Assembly (NCBI GenBank): GCA_965644295.1
Contig: CBFFRP010000167.1
Span: forward strand, 62,001 to 126,000
DNA: 64,000 nt
Source of the DNA: Paraphysomonas bandaiensis
Taxonomy: Eukaryota > Protista > Chrysophyceae
Reading direction: 5' to 3'
Shown piece after piece: positions 58,418 to 62,809 of the stretch; the stretch's first letter is position 1; each line of letters opens with the position of its first letter. The translations under genes and the position numbers were made by a program. The notes beneath the pieces are model-generated. The model saw only the letters and a program-made list of their open reading frames with translations, was not told the DNA's origin and made no database searches.

Positions 58418-59030
58418 ATGGATCTTTGTTTCGACGAGCTTGCTGTGGCACTGAGGTTATAAAATGCGATTGTTTGTGAAGTCTGGGGCTTAAAATTTAT
58501 TTTGCAGGTATATCGCTGATGTGGAACTCGCAGCAGCACCTGATGCTACTCAGAAGAAGGCATCTGCCCCAGCACAGCCTAGTAAACCAGCAGCCAAAGC
58601 TGATGATTTCGATGATATGTTTGGCGATGATGATGATGAGACCGAAGAGGAGAAGGCAGCTAACAAAGCAAGACAAGAGCGTATGGCTCTTGCCAAAAAA
58701 CTGAAGGAGGAAAAGGATGCCAAGGAAGGAAAAGTAAAGAAAAATAAGCCAAAGCCCGTGGAAAAGTCTCTTATTGTTCTAGACGTTAAGCCTTGGGAGG
58801 CCGACTGCGACCTTGAGGCTGTTTGGAAGGAGATCATCAAGTATGAACAAGAGGGACTTCAGTGGGGTGCCACTTTTAAACTCGAGCCTGTGGCTTTTGG
58901 AATCAAAAAGCTTGTTCTCACCTGTACTATAGTTGATAGTCTGGTGCTGTTAGATGATGTGACCGATAATATTGAGGCGATGGAGGATTATGTGCAGAGT
59001 GTCACTGTTGCTTCAATGAACAAAATATAA
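58418..59030 (+). CDS. EEF1B: Elongation factor 1-beta/delta guanine nucleotide exchange subunit
   Basis: DDFDDMFGDDDDE, KSLIVLDVKPWE, GLQWGATFKLEPVAFGIKKL, VQSVTVASMNKI*. A probable first exon 58418-58455 (MDLCFDELAVALR) precedes intron 58456-58507. The start is uncertain. Confidence 0.92.
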
Positions 59031-59886
59031 TTTGGTTGCAAGCTTATCGTCAACGAAACAGCACAAAATGATGCTCTTATCTTGTTGTCCATTTAATAAT
59101 TGAGAGTCGATTGAAAATTTTGTGTATTTTTGTCAATTTTGGATCACTGTGAAGCTCGTGTGTTTGTTGTACGTAGTATTCTTAGTTTCTCAGATAGAAC
59201 TTCTTTGTATTTACAAAGCACTACCGTACGCTATGTATACTTTTAGGATGATAATTGGAGGTATTGTGGCTAATACTTCCTTTCTCAAGTATTATTCAGC
59301 GTAGCTTTATGCGTGCTTAGCGGAACAAATTTCGCAGTCATGCGTGCGCATGCACGGTTAATCAAGTTGCTTCTCATTGATTTCGGTTTACTTCACTCTA
59401 TTCTACGGATTAAGTTAAATGGATAAGTTACTTTCAATATATATCATAAAACAAAGTTGATGTGCCACTTGTCTGTCTGAAGATTTAATGAAGCTGTCGT
59501 TTGTCATTTTCTTCATTAGGAAAAAAAATGACCCATTGTTCTATTACCTACATCACTAAACTAGAAGCAACATCGTATGTACTATATGGGATGCATAGAA
59601 ACATCCTTCCCTATTAACTTCACGGAAATGACATTTGACAGAACTACTACACAACTACGGATGGGATTCATCCCGTTTGACATCTAGAAAACATATAGTA
59701 TTCAAATCAGCATACACCGCTATGATTAGTTAAATAAAGCCATGAATGCAAAGAAGCTTGCCTAATTCTAGACATTATCAGATTATTTCGCACTTAGTGA
59801 TTATCAGCAACATACTGTACACAATAGAGATATTGTAGGCAGTTGACAAGGATATGTGGCGATTTTCATGGTCGTCGGACGAAAAT

Positions 59887-60993
59887 TTAAGAAGGAGGAT
59901 ATCCACCAATATCGATGCCAAACTTATCCAATACTTTGTTCGTAAGAAGAATTAGTGTGTACTGCAAGTTGTTTTGAAGTGAGAGGGAAATGTTGACTTC
60001 GCGAATAGGCACCCCAATGCTGAGCCCTTCATAATTTTTTATAGTGTGCCACTCCCAGTCAGGGTTGTAGAGTAGATCACCGGCAATAACATCAGAGTAT
60101 CGCAGAGGAATATGATCGTGAAGCTCAGCCATGTTGCGATTTCCGGTTTGCATATTGACTTTTCCTCCTCGCAGAGGGTACATTTGTGAGCTGTATTTGG
60201 GATCCATGAAATACCATCTCTTGCGTCCTGTCACTTGAGCGAACCAATTATTTCCACCAGCACAATGCCAGCCAGTGCCAGTAGTAGCATCACTGTCATT
60301 TGAGCCACGTCCCACAACAAGCTGAGAGCCGAAGAACGATTTGTGATTCGGTCCTCCGAATCCCGGCCAAATTCTGTCGAGATCCAAATCTTCGCGAACA
60401 ACTTGATTAATTCGCTTGCGCAACTCTTTCGCAGAACCGACATCAGAATGGTTGAAATTAGAACGCGACTCTACAGGGAAAAATAGATACTTCTTAGAGT
60501 CTTCCTGCTCCACAATTTCAGTGTACGCAGTGCGAAAAGGTAGCAGCTCACGCTCATTCTGAAGTGTTCCATAAGTAGCCTTAGATACCACCGGGATAAT
60601 GAATTCCCCAATTCTAGACGACAAATATTCTGGATCGGTCCATCTTTTCTCCGCATTGCTCCCGATAAAAAGACCACGAACAATGGCCGGGTAACGAAAA
60701 TTCTCCGTAGCAGTTCTCAAAGACTCGAATGAGTAATCTTTGGCATCAATAATAGGGATCTGAATAGGGGCCCTCTTGATTGATCTATCAATATTATTGA
60801 ACTGATTCCAAAAACTTCTCGCTTCCTCCCGATAGGATGTGAACAACAGAGCATTAGGGATGATATGGAGCAAGGAGTCCCCCGCCTGGCGAGTGCGTAG
60901 AATGGGAATCATGACAATAGCAGCCACGAGAGGGACGATGACAAACGTCATCAACGCCGAACAAACTGAACGTTTCTTTGCACGACTAGACAT
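59887..60993 (-). CDS. Membrane-anchored JmjC/cupin-like Fe(II)/2OG oxygenase-fold protein with an H-x-A metal motif, intronless
   Basis: N-terminal TM segment (ALMTFVIVPLVAAIVMIPIL); PAIVRGL; TGWHCAGGNNWFAQVTGRKRWYF; GDLLYNPDWEWHTIKN. Confidence 0.88.
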   Translation of the reverse strand: MSSRAKKRSVCSALMTFVIVPLVAAIVMIPILRTRQAGDSLLHIIPNALLFTSYREEARSFWNQFNNIDRSIKRAPIQIPIIDAKDYSFESLRTATENFRYPAIVRGLFIGSNAEKRWTDPEYLSSRIGEFIIPVVSKATYGTLQNERELLPFRTAYTEIVEQEDSKKYLFFPVESRSNFNHSDVGSAKELRKRINQVVREDLDLDRIWPGFGGPNHKSFFGSQLVVGRGSNDSDATTGTGWHCAGGNNWFAQVTGRKRWYFMDPKYSSQMYPLRGGKVNMQTGNRNMAELHDHIPLRYSDVIAGDLLYNPDWEWHTIKNYEGLSIGVPIREVNISLSLQNNLQYTLILLTNKVLDKFGIDIGGYPPS

Positions 60994-61579
60994 TGCAATA
61001 TTCCAATATAGCCACACAGGTTAAAAATAAGTCAGTGCGGAGATGATATAAATATATGGGTCCACATGTGCATGTATTTGATGCACAGAATACGCCTATA
61101 GAGAGTTGAAGCAACGTGCAATGAAGTGCATATGGATGATGCTGTGGGTGGTGGTCGAGAGCCTGCCTGTATCTATAATACAACTACAGCATCTGTATTC
61201 TGTGTATATGTGCTGTATACACTAGACAGTAGGTCTATACCAAGTTAAGAGAAGAATGGCATTTTTTTAACTGTCGGGAAGGCATAAATCTGGATTTATT
61301 GCATATATTGGAGTTTTTTGTCCTCCTTTAGGTTATAAATACACGATTCCTTTCTGGAACTGTGCAGCATAATAAGACAATATGGCAGTTCGGCAGTATG
61401 GTATGCATTACGTAGAGGAGTATTAACTTTAACCCACTGGAAGGACGCTCATCAATCCCTCAATTTTGTTTATAACTTTCTGTTGATTTGCTGCTTATAT
61501 TTGATATATTTGTTGCGATTCTAACAGTTTCCATCAACACAAGCAGTCCTGTTATTGGCAAATAGCTCTCGCCATTCAT

Positions 61580-61851
61580 ATGATAGAAGTCGTATGTAAC
61601 GATCGTCTCGGTAAAAAAGTCAGAGTCAAATGTAACGAAGACGATACCATAGGAGACTTAAAGAAATTAATAGCTGCTCAGGTAAATATTAGATACATTT
61701 CACTACGAGTTGTGACATCAGTCTTTGTAAGGTTGGAACACGACCCGAAAAAATCCGAATTCAGAAGTGGTACACAATATATAAAGACCATATTACACTG
61801 GAGGATTATGAGATTCACGATGGTATGGGTTTGGAATTGTATTATAATTAG
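61580..61851 (+). CDS. UBL5: Ubiquitin-like protein 5 (Hub1), 2 exons
   Basis: [34 protein letters not shown]|[39 protein letters not shown]. Intron 61682-61731. Confidence 0.98.
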
Positions 61852-62809
61852 GCTATCGCAGTGTTTGCCGTTTCTGAGAATGAGTGGTTTCGCGTTCATG
61901 TCCTTCTGCAGAGAAGTATTGGGTTGATAGTCATATAGTTTAAAATGAAATTCATGAACAGCACAGAAGTAATTTATAAATCAATGAATTGCTTCAACAT
62001 ACGTGATATAGCCTTAATCGAATAGTGTGGTAATTTTGGGTCACGTGCATACTACTTGTAGAGTTTGACATTCGTAACATTCGTAAATCTATTCTTACTC
62101 CACGACATCGCCTATACTAGAGACAAAACATTGTTTATATCAAAATTCTGCATGGCGTATGTCCAATAGTTGTGTTGGTTGAAATAAGCCCTACATGCAT
62201 TTATGCATTTTATTATGGTCTCGGCACCAAGCAAAATATAAGCATCATTTCTGATGAGTAGCGCAAGCAACCTGAAGCACTTAAACCAATGGATAACACG
62301 CAGCAAAAAATCACGACGGTCATCAAAGCACAACAATTCCATGGGTCAAGAGGGGTTTGGACAGCAAAAGGGTTAGAAACGCCCACAAACACTTCCCTCC
62401 AACAACACCTCAAGTTGAGAAGCCGGAATATCTCTTACATCCGAGATAACGAAAGTAGAACTGCAAGGTACTTCACGACTTATTCATCAACATCAACGAA
62501 GTAGGCATATAATATTTGTCTATCATCGCTGAGAAAAGAGAAATGTCATCATCCAAGTGCACTATACGGGGGGCGGATGCGGTGGTTTCTGGAAGGTGGA
62601 GATGCATAAAATTAACAGAGACCGAGAAAACTGCACGAGATTATCTAAACGCTAACATCAGGTGCTGAGAATATAAAGTTACTCACACTTCGCGTAATAG
62701 TTATAATTAATAATCTAAATTAAAGTTTTTCAAAACGTGAATTCGGATATTCAAACACGAATGGATTCGAAGATGGCTATAATGTAGGACATTTTACACA
62801 TATAGTGCT

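Follow-up and report, generated by a model that had tools for sequence, protein, structure and literature searches.

Does an oxygenase of the JmjC fold that has lost the carboxylate ligand of its iron site still hydroxylate, or does it halogenate? This question is raised by a gene of the chrysophyte Paraphysomonas bandaiensis, found in a 64-kb window (the whole stretch of DNA that was analysed, 64,000 nucleotides). An earlier note on the window pointed to an H-x-A motif where JmjC hydroxylases have H-x-D/E, and proposed an undescribed family of JmjC-fold halogenases that acts in the secretory pathway. The reaction type is placed here between halogenation and hydroxylation, and the protein is best filed as a two-histidine Fe/2OG enzyme of the OocP-like Cupin_8 branch, eukaryotic and membrane-anchored.

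The gene is an open reading frame of 368 codons on the minus strand of the window, with the ATG at 60993 and the stop codon at 59887-59889. The coding sequence (59887..60993 (-); 368 amino acids plus stop, protein P0001) is covered over 97-100% by homologues of 360-370 amino acids. At the RNA level, the region 59707-61031 is colinear with RNA contigs from four runs, with 0 differences, no joints and no gap. Three of the four RNA libraries are marine metatranscriptomes from different studies, and one of these was poly(A)-selected. One RNA contig has 23 T residues (plus strand) before 59707, which represent the poly(A) tail of a minus-strand transcript, and the flanks at 59400-59700 and 61033-61420 have no RNA contig coverage in the four libraries. 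The unbroken cover, the poly(A) tail and the bare flanks thus show that the JmjC gene is intronless and is expressed as a polyadenylated mRNA of ~1.3 kb (59707..61031 (-)). The untranslated regions are ~38 nt at the 5′ end and ~180 nt at the 3′ end, and the leader has no upstream ATG. A second JmjC copy was not found within the 64-kb window.

At the translated amino acid level, residues 101-328 (60010..60693 (-)) form a Cupin_8/JmjC double-stranded beta-helix domain, as seen from the Pfam match (PF13621, E=2.4e-10; 41.2 bits with a cut-off of 27.4), from the structural model and from structural matches. Asp_Arg_Hydrox (PF05118) and TPR domains have no Pfam match in the 368 amino acid protein, and NCBIfam gives no match for the protein or for nine relatives. 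The iron site of FIH serves as the reference. By both sequence and profile alignment, H243, A245 and H316 fall on FIH H199, D201 and H279; both histidine ligands are therefore present and the D/E carboxylate is missing. The motif H243-C244-A245, with the proximal iron histidine and Ala in place of the Asp/Glu ligand, lies at 60259..60267 (-). These are the coordinates that the earlier note had assigned to W-H-C-A; they are correct for H-C-A, but the four residues are translated from 60259-60270 (-), and W242 (60268-60270) lies outside. Among the FIH chains, the engineered mutants D201A and D201G give the highest scores, an independent sign that Ala245 is exactly at the carboxylate position. 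The distal ligand, invariant His316, is at 60046..60048 (-), as had been noted under the wider label WHT, which is translated from 60043-60051 (-).

The 2OG-binding strand, N248-W260 (60214..60252 (-)), translates to NNWFAQVTGRKRW and carries N249, F251 and K258, which align on FIH N205, F207 and K214; the codon of K258 is at 60220-60222. Thr240 (60274..60276 (-)) is the equivalent of FIH T196 by FIH alignment, and Tyr169 (60487..60489 (-)) that of FIH Y145 by profile alignment. In FIH, these two residues contact the C5-carboxylate of 2OG. Thus K258, T240, N249 and Y169, on FIH K214, T196, N205 and Y145, make up an intact 2OG set, and the earlier statement that the 2OG-binding region is kept is borne out.

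The structure predicted by AlphaFold2 with the family alignment has a mean pLDDT of 94.1 and a pTM of 0.91. It displays a long N-terminal helix (residues 11-36), two short helices (41-49 and 55-65, with high pLDDT) and a double-stranded beta-helix core. Foldseek matches include TYW5, FIH, JMJD7, JMJD5 and the chain 8a82_A, whose PDB entry is titled 'Fe(II)/aKG-dependent halogenase OocPQ'. The family profile matches OocP over nearly the full length with E=6.1e-37 and 131 bits, as compared with E=3.4e-20 for FIH, and OocP also ranks first when the single query sequence is used. On structural re-alignment OocP again comes first and gives the longest alignment (model range 33-357), and the helices that follow the membrane anchor align structurally with OocP only. 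OocP is thus the closest solved protein over the full length by both profile and structure. A word-indexed search with the broad bacterial alignment (A2) found no OocP homologues, and the 86-row tree discussed below does not contain OocP.

OocP is described as an Fe(II)/2OG halogenase that works in trans and, paired with OocQ in a heterodimer, chlorinates the growing oocydin chain (PMC11260071); deletion of oocP abolishes bioactivity (PMC4552970). Since this Cupin_8/JmjC halogenase was described in 2022-23 (PMC11260071), a halogenase of the JmjC fold is already known in bacteria. The proposal of an undescribed JmjC-fold halogenase family therefore has to be narrowed, in that OocP/OocPQ (PDB 8A82) precedes it and the HxA clade that contains the algal proteins is a wider one, with bacterial members. 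The algal family is a relative of OocP, and it is the membrane-anchored eukaryotic clade that is undescribed. A literature search returned no paper naming a JmjC or cupin halogenase in those words.

The family is large. A word-indexed search gave 168 relatives, many at 45-80% identity, and an exhaustive search gave 595 at E <= 0.001. The named organisms among the 168 relatives are the chrysophyte Paraphysomonas, Ochromonadaceae sp. CCMP2298, Ectocarpus, Phaeomonas, Synchroma and the diatoms Leptocylindrus and Proboscia. H-C-A is found at the iron site in 167 of ~200 aligned homologues, which range from ochrophyte algae (chrysophytes, diatoms, brown algae) to bacteria; the minority motifs in this alignment are HCE, HTE, HCD, HAD, HGD, HSA, HAA, HAG and HCS. 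In an alignment of 101 sequences, with identities down to 21%, H243, G256, K258, W260, G305, D306 and H316 are invariant, and N249 and F251 are at least 90% conserved. Among eukaryotic HxA members Tyr169 is conserved at 97% and Cys244 at 99%. Ala is strictly kept in HxA members, even though Asp is a single base change away. Loss of the carboxylate is accordingly a family trait and isolated degeneration is excluded, and the retention of both histidines and of the 2OG machinery makes a pseudoenzyme very unlikely. The family-wide conservation of HCA, the distal His and the Lys, which the earlier note had raised as a point to check, is evident from these alignments (HCA in 167 of ~200; H243, K258 and H316 invariant). 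D306 is the sole acidic residue kept family-wide, but it is part of the general PxGD...H cupin motif that FIH also has, and is therefore probably not a compensating ligand. In a protein atlas, the clusters nearest by language-model features and structure include Cupin_8 clusters that consist largely of giant-virus (Nucleocytoviricota) proteins.

Relatives with a carboxylate are also present, with HxE/HxD proteins scoring as near as E=1e-85. The earlier note had held that HxD in close homologues would speak for isolated degeneration. Such homologues do exist, but they are a minority (17 of the 86 rows of a quick maximum-likelihood tree have HxD/E), and most rows have HxA on the mostly bacterial side of the tree as well as on the eukaryotic side. 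The HxD/E rows form several groups that branch from within the eukaryotic HxA rows at four or more points. A single HxD/E clade is not rejected in the AU test (p=0.164), and repeated switching from A to D/E is therefore not claimed. Seven residues that are at least 85% conserved in HxA proteins, P134, Q145, Y169, W209, T238, G277 and T317, are lost in three or more HxD/E groups. The losses are more in line with a change of function than with neutral exchange; this is a weak argument, as the groups concerned are more divergent overall. Membrane-anchored eukaryotic relatives that have regained or kept a carboxylate are P0130, P0138-P0140, P0147, P0148, P0150 and P0153 (HxE) and P0179-P0207 (HxD), with the motifs HTE, HCE, HAE, HCD, HAD and HGD. 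The HxD group (P0179-P0207) also lacks the equivalent of Tyr169. These eukaryotic HxE/HxD relatives are natural partners for a comparison of halogenase and hydroxylase.

The N-terminal membrane anchor that was noted earlier is supported by the model and by hydropathy. It consists of residues 11-36 (60886..60963 (-)), which form the long N-terminal helix, and is preceded by R4, K6, K7 and R8; residues 14-32 are hydrophobic, with a Kyte-Doolittle mean of 2.76. The anchor is followed by conserved helices (residues 41-65, 60799..60873 (-)) with the alignment consensus PNxLLFTP..., which lie ahead of the JmjC core. An N-terminal hydrophobic segment (Kyte-Doolittle >= 1.6) is found in 85 of 93 full-length eukaryotic members, and most bacterial members are without it. 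Of 93 segment-bearing members (a slightly wider set), 74 have a higher net positive charge on the N flank of the segment than on the C flank, with means of +1.9 vs 0.0; the flanks of the query have +4 (N) and +1 (C). By the positive-inside rule, such a charge pattern would make the segment a type II signal-anchor and place the catalytic domain on the lumenal side. The location in the secretory pathway suggested by the earlier note would thus fit both the anchor and the charges.

The JmjC gene is a solitary one, flanked by genes for EF-1beta and a putative ubiquitin-like protein, and neither neighbour points to an OocQ-type partner or to a PKS or carrier-protein context. The neighbours of two eukaryotic orthologues are unrelated genes only. 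The EF-1beta open reading frame (window 58521-59030 (+)) is convergent with and downstream of the JmjC gene, and ends in an EF-1 guanine nucleotide exchange domain (Pfam EF1_GNE, E=2.7e-25). On the other side, RNA contigs of the region 61422-61927 (+) start at ~61422-61444, and the open reading frame from 61580 (+) appears by eye to be the first exon of a small ubiquitin-like protein of the Hub1/UBL5 type, interrupted by an intron; its 34 amino acid piece has no Pfam match.

Bacterial relatives, found by a genome scan with a narrower alignment (A3), have 25-33% identity and come from Cyanobacteria, Myxococcota (Nannocystaceae, Polyangia), an Enterobacterales MAG and Burkholderia. HxA is present at all ten of the ten bacterial loci, as HCA, HAA, HHA or HTA. 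In Burkholderia sp. BCC0405 (GCA_902833075.1; L014:5047-6755), the HCA Cupin_8 gene overlaps the end of a 210 amino acid Asp_Arg_Hydrox gene, an arrangement that is repeated in L015 and in two JGI (metagenomic) contigs. This overlap may reflect a two-subunit arrangement like that of OocP and OocQ. The Burkholderia cluster also encodes an ACP, a ketosynthase, a DUF6206 protein, an acyl-ACP desaturase, a cyclopropane-synthase-like (CMAS-type) methyltransferase and a fatty-acyl-AMP-ligase/ACP/luciferase-like/aminotransferase protein, and one contig with the Burkholderia-type arrangement has an NRPS and a P450 as well. At a second locus (GCA_029261895.1, L001:1862-10972; the same in L002), the HCA Cupin_8 gene lies among three sulfotransferase genes, together with genes for two SDRs, an epimerase, a P450, an enoyl-CoA hydratase and a PhyH protein with the canonical H-A-D; this looks like a cluster for a sulfated, oxidised and possibly halogenated lipid. 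In Polyangia/Nannocystaceae MAGs (L008:9956-11800 and L007:9959-11824), an HAA Cupin_8 gene has an ECF sigma factor gene before it and, directly after it, a FeeM-type N-acyl amino acid synthase gene. Two contexts are uninformative: the cyanobacterial one (L006) has a methyltransferase, an FAD monooxygenase, MetE and a TonB receptor, and in the Enterobacterales MAG (L009) a GGDEF protein alone is recognisable. In three of the five bacterial contexts, the neighbouring genes thus suggest aliphatic substrates that are carrier-bound or lipid-like, as with OocP; this lends remote support to a similar substrate in the algae.

The reading preferred here is that of a type II anchored, lumen-facing Fe(II)/2OG radical halogenase of the OocP-like Cupin_8 branch, to which a probability of about one in two is given. 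The gene and its expression, the fold, the set of ligands, the HxA motif of the family and the homology to OocP are established by the analysis; topology, halide binding, reaction type and substrate class are predicted from them. A single N-terminal signal-anchor would hold the protein in the endomembrane with its catalytic domain on the lumenal side. Iron would be bound by His243 and His316 only, and 2OG by Tyr169, Thr240, Asn249 and Lys258; with Ala245 at the place of the carboxylate, one coordination position would be open and could take up chloride or bromide. Activation of O2 would then lead to a halo-ferryl species, hydrogen abstraction from an unactivated aliphatic carbon and rebound of the halogen, as in OocP and SyrB2. 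The substrate would be lipid-like or another aliphatic compound of the secretory pathway. A lipid-like substrate is suggested because of the anchor, the membrane-proximal helices and the lipid or acyl-carrier contexts of the three bacterial relatives.

Several properties of the family favor halogenation: HxA is kept from bacteria to algae in an otherwise intact Fe/2OG site, with Asp one base change off; OocP, the nearest relative that has been characterised, is a halogenase in which a small residue likewise stands in for the carboxylate; and the bacterial contexts resemble those of carrier-dependent halogenases. However, the protein is only ~20% identical to OocP, whose Gly, OocQ partner and PKS-bound substrate are not seen here. 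In addition, a two-His site is insufficient for halogenation, as ER-anchored AspH hydroxylates only (PMC13168262, PMC6817910). AspH leads to the main competing explanation, a two-histidine hydroxylase in which water or a group of the substrate would occupy the position vacated at Ala245, and the ferryl would hydroxylate a protein, glycan or lipid of the secretory pathway; the new hydroxyl may then be sulfated or glycosylated. Such an enzyme is a serious possibility, if at somewhat less than even odds. It was already listed in the earlier note and has strong precedents, in that AspH is an ER-anchored type II protein that uses two His without halogenation, and FIH D201G still hydroxylates. The 45-80% identity over chrysophytes, diatoms and brown algae is more like that of a housekeeping modification, and no halogenated compound common to the three groups is known; the breadth and strong conservation of the family are in keeping with a hydroxylase. 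In Iyer et al. 2010, extracellular FIH-like stramenopile proteins are interpreted as hydroxylases and, together with related bacterial enzymes, tied to sulfotransferases (PMC2938197), and one bacterial HCA relative is the gene among three sulfotransferase genes described above. The HxE/HxD relatives, close up to E=1e-85, also weigh against halogenation, since the carboxylate could be dispensable for one reaction shared by all. In the algal protein, a non-conserved acidic side chain may reach the iron. On the other hand, a hydroxylase does not readily account for a halogenase as nearest characterised relative by both profile and structure, for the absent Asp_Arg_Hydrox signature, for the strict retention of Ala in HxA members with Asp one base off, or for the loss of Q145, Y169, W209, T238, G277 and T317 in three or more HxD/E groups.

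A two-His Fe/2OG enzyme might also catalyze another reaction, such as desaturation, ring closure or C-C/C-N bond formation, with a carboxylate, sulfate or phosphate of the substrate as iron ligand. The open coordination site and the intact 2OG site would permit this, and non-canonical Fe/2OG reactions are common in biosynthetic clusters, where bacterial relatives are found. Nothing specific in the sequence points to such chemistry, and we know of no precedent in the JmjC/Cupin_8 branch; it is improbable. Still lower, and hardly credible, stand a pseudoenzyme and a Cys-assisted metal site in which Cys244 would replace the lost carboxylate, both of which the earlier note had listed as alternatives. 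The canonical triad is lost, and Cys244 is conserved at 99% in eukaryotic HxA members. Both His, the 2OG Lys and the surrounding Gly and Trp residues are nevertheless invariant, so that the rest of the Fe/2OG machinery is intact. Cys244 is found equally in HCD/HCE relatives, and in other HxA members Ala, Ser, Thr, His or Asn takes its place; its presence is not coupled to the loss of the carboxylate, for which it is therefore no stand-in. In double-stranded beta-helix oxygenases, moreover, the middle residue of the HxD strand points off the metal. Both readings are rejected on conservation grounds.

If the lumen-facing radical halogenase is nonetheless the correct reading, a possible product may be considered. 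The chlorines of chlorosulfolipids sit on unactivated carbons, and their introduction in chrysophytes would suit a family of membrane-anchored radical halogenases that has several paralogues; this is no more than a lead. Polychlorinated sulfolipids are made by chrysophytes, and marine samples contain similar compounds of unassigned origin (PMC13413282). A literature search found no paper naming a chlorosulfolipid halogenase. The lead is weakened by the marine habitat of the window's organism and by the presence of the family in diatoms and brown algae as well. A more general version, in which the ochrophyte HxA JmjC proteins would be multi-paralogue lumen-facing radical halogenases that act on unactivated carbons of membrane lipids (chlorosulfolipids and the polychlorinated sulfolipids of marine plankton) or on secretory proteins, is unlikely. 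Were it true, these proteins would be the first protist Fe/2OG halogenases and a source of marine organohalogens. To our knowledge, Fe/2OG halogenases are found almost only in bacterial secondary metabolism, plus one plant alkaloid pathway, and they are prized for selective C-H chlorination. A conserved, expressed and anchored family over diatoms, chrysophytes and brown algae would, if it halogenates, be a new enzymatic source of organohalogens, and would offer candidates for chlorosulfolipid biosynthesis as well as catalysts on a JmjC scaffold.

Several groups of known enzymes can be compared with the algal protein. FIH, TYW5, JMJD5 and JMJD7 have HxD, are soluble cytosolic or nuclear hydroxylases of proteins or tRNA, and match the profile with E=3e-20 or weaker. 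FIH1-like JmjC proteins with a predicted extracytoplasmic location that are expanded in stramenopiles and Monosiga were read as hydroxylases linked to sulfotransferases by Iyer et al. 2010 (PMC2938197). That set probably overlaps the HxA family, but the missing carboxylate is not reported there. Halogenases of the SyrB2 type (HxA) and of the WelO5/BesD type (HxG) resemble the algal protein in having Ala or Gly in place of the carboxylate with the rest of the Fe/2OG site intact. They differ in that they belong to other branches of 2OG oxygenases (PhyH-like and others), are bacterial and soluble, and have carrier-tethered or free small-molecule substrates.

[quoted passage not shown] It is an ER-anchored hydroxylase that works without halogenation and has water at the vacant site (PMC13168262, PMC6817910). 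AspH differs in belonging to the Pfam Asp_Arg_Hydrox family, in having a TPR domain, and in its Gly at the vacant position, where D721 holds a water. Should the HxA proteins be hydroxylases, AspH would no longer be the only natural two-His case, and the comparison would inform on what decides between hydroxylation and halogenation.

The closest likeness is to OocP of Serratia (oocydin trans-AT PKS, PDB 8A82), which also has the Cupin_8/JmjC fold, two His ligands and a small residue at the place of the carboxylate. The two proteins also have the motifs GxKRWyFiDP and LEPGD...H in common, and where the algal protein has R331, OocP has an Arg as well. The iron motif is H-Q-G in OocP and H-C-A in the algal protein, and identity between the two is ~20%. 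OocP is a soluble protein that pairs with OocQ as a heterodimer; its gene is part of a biosynthetic cluster, and its substrate, on which it acts in trans, is an intermediate bound to the PKS (PMC11260071), whereas the algal protein is membrane-anchored and is the product of a stand-alone gene.
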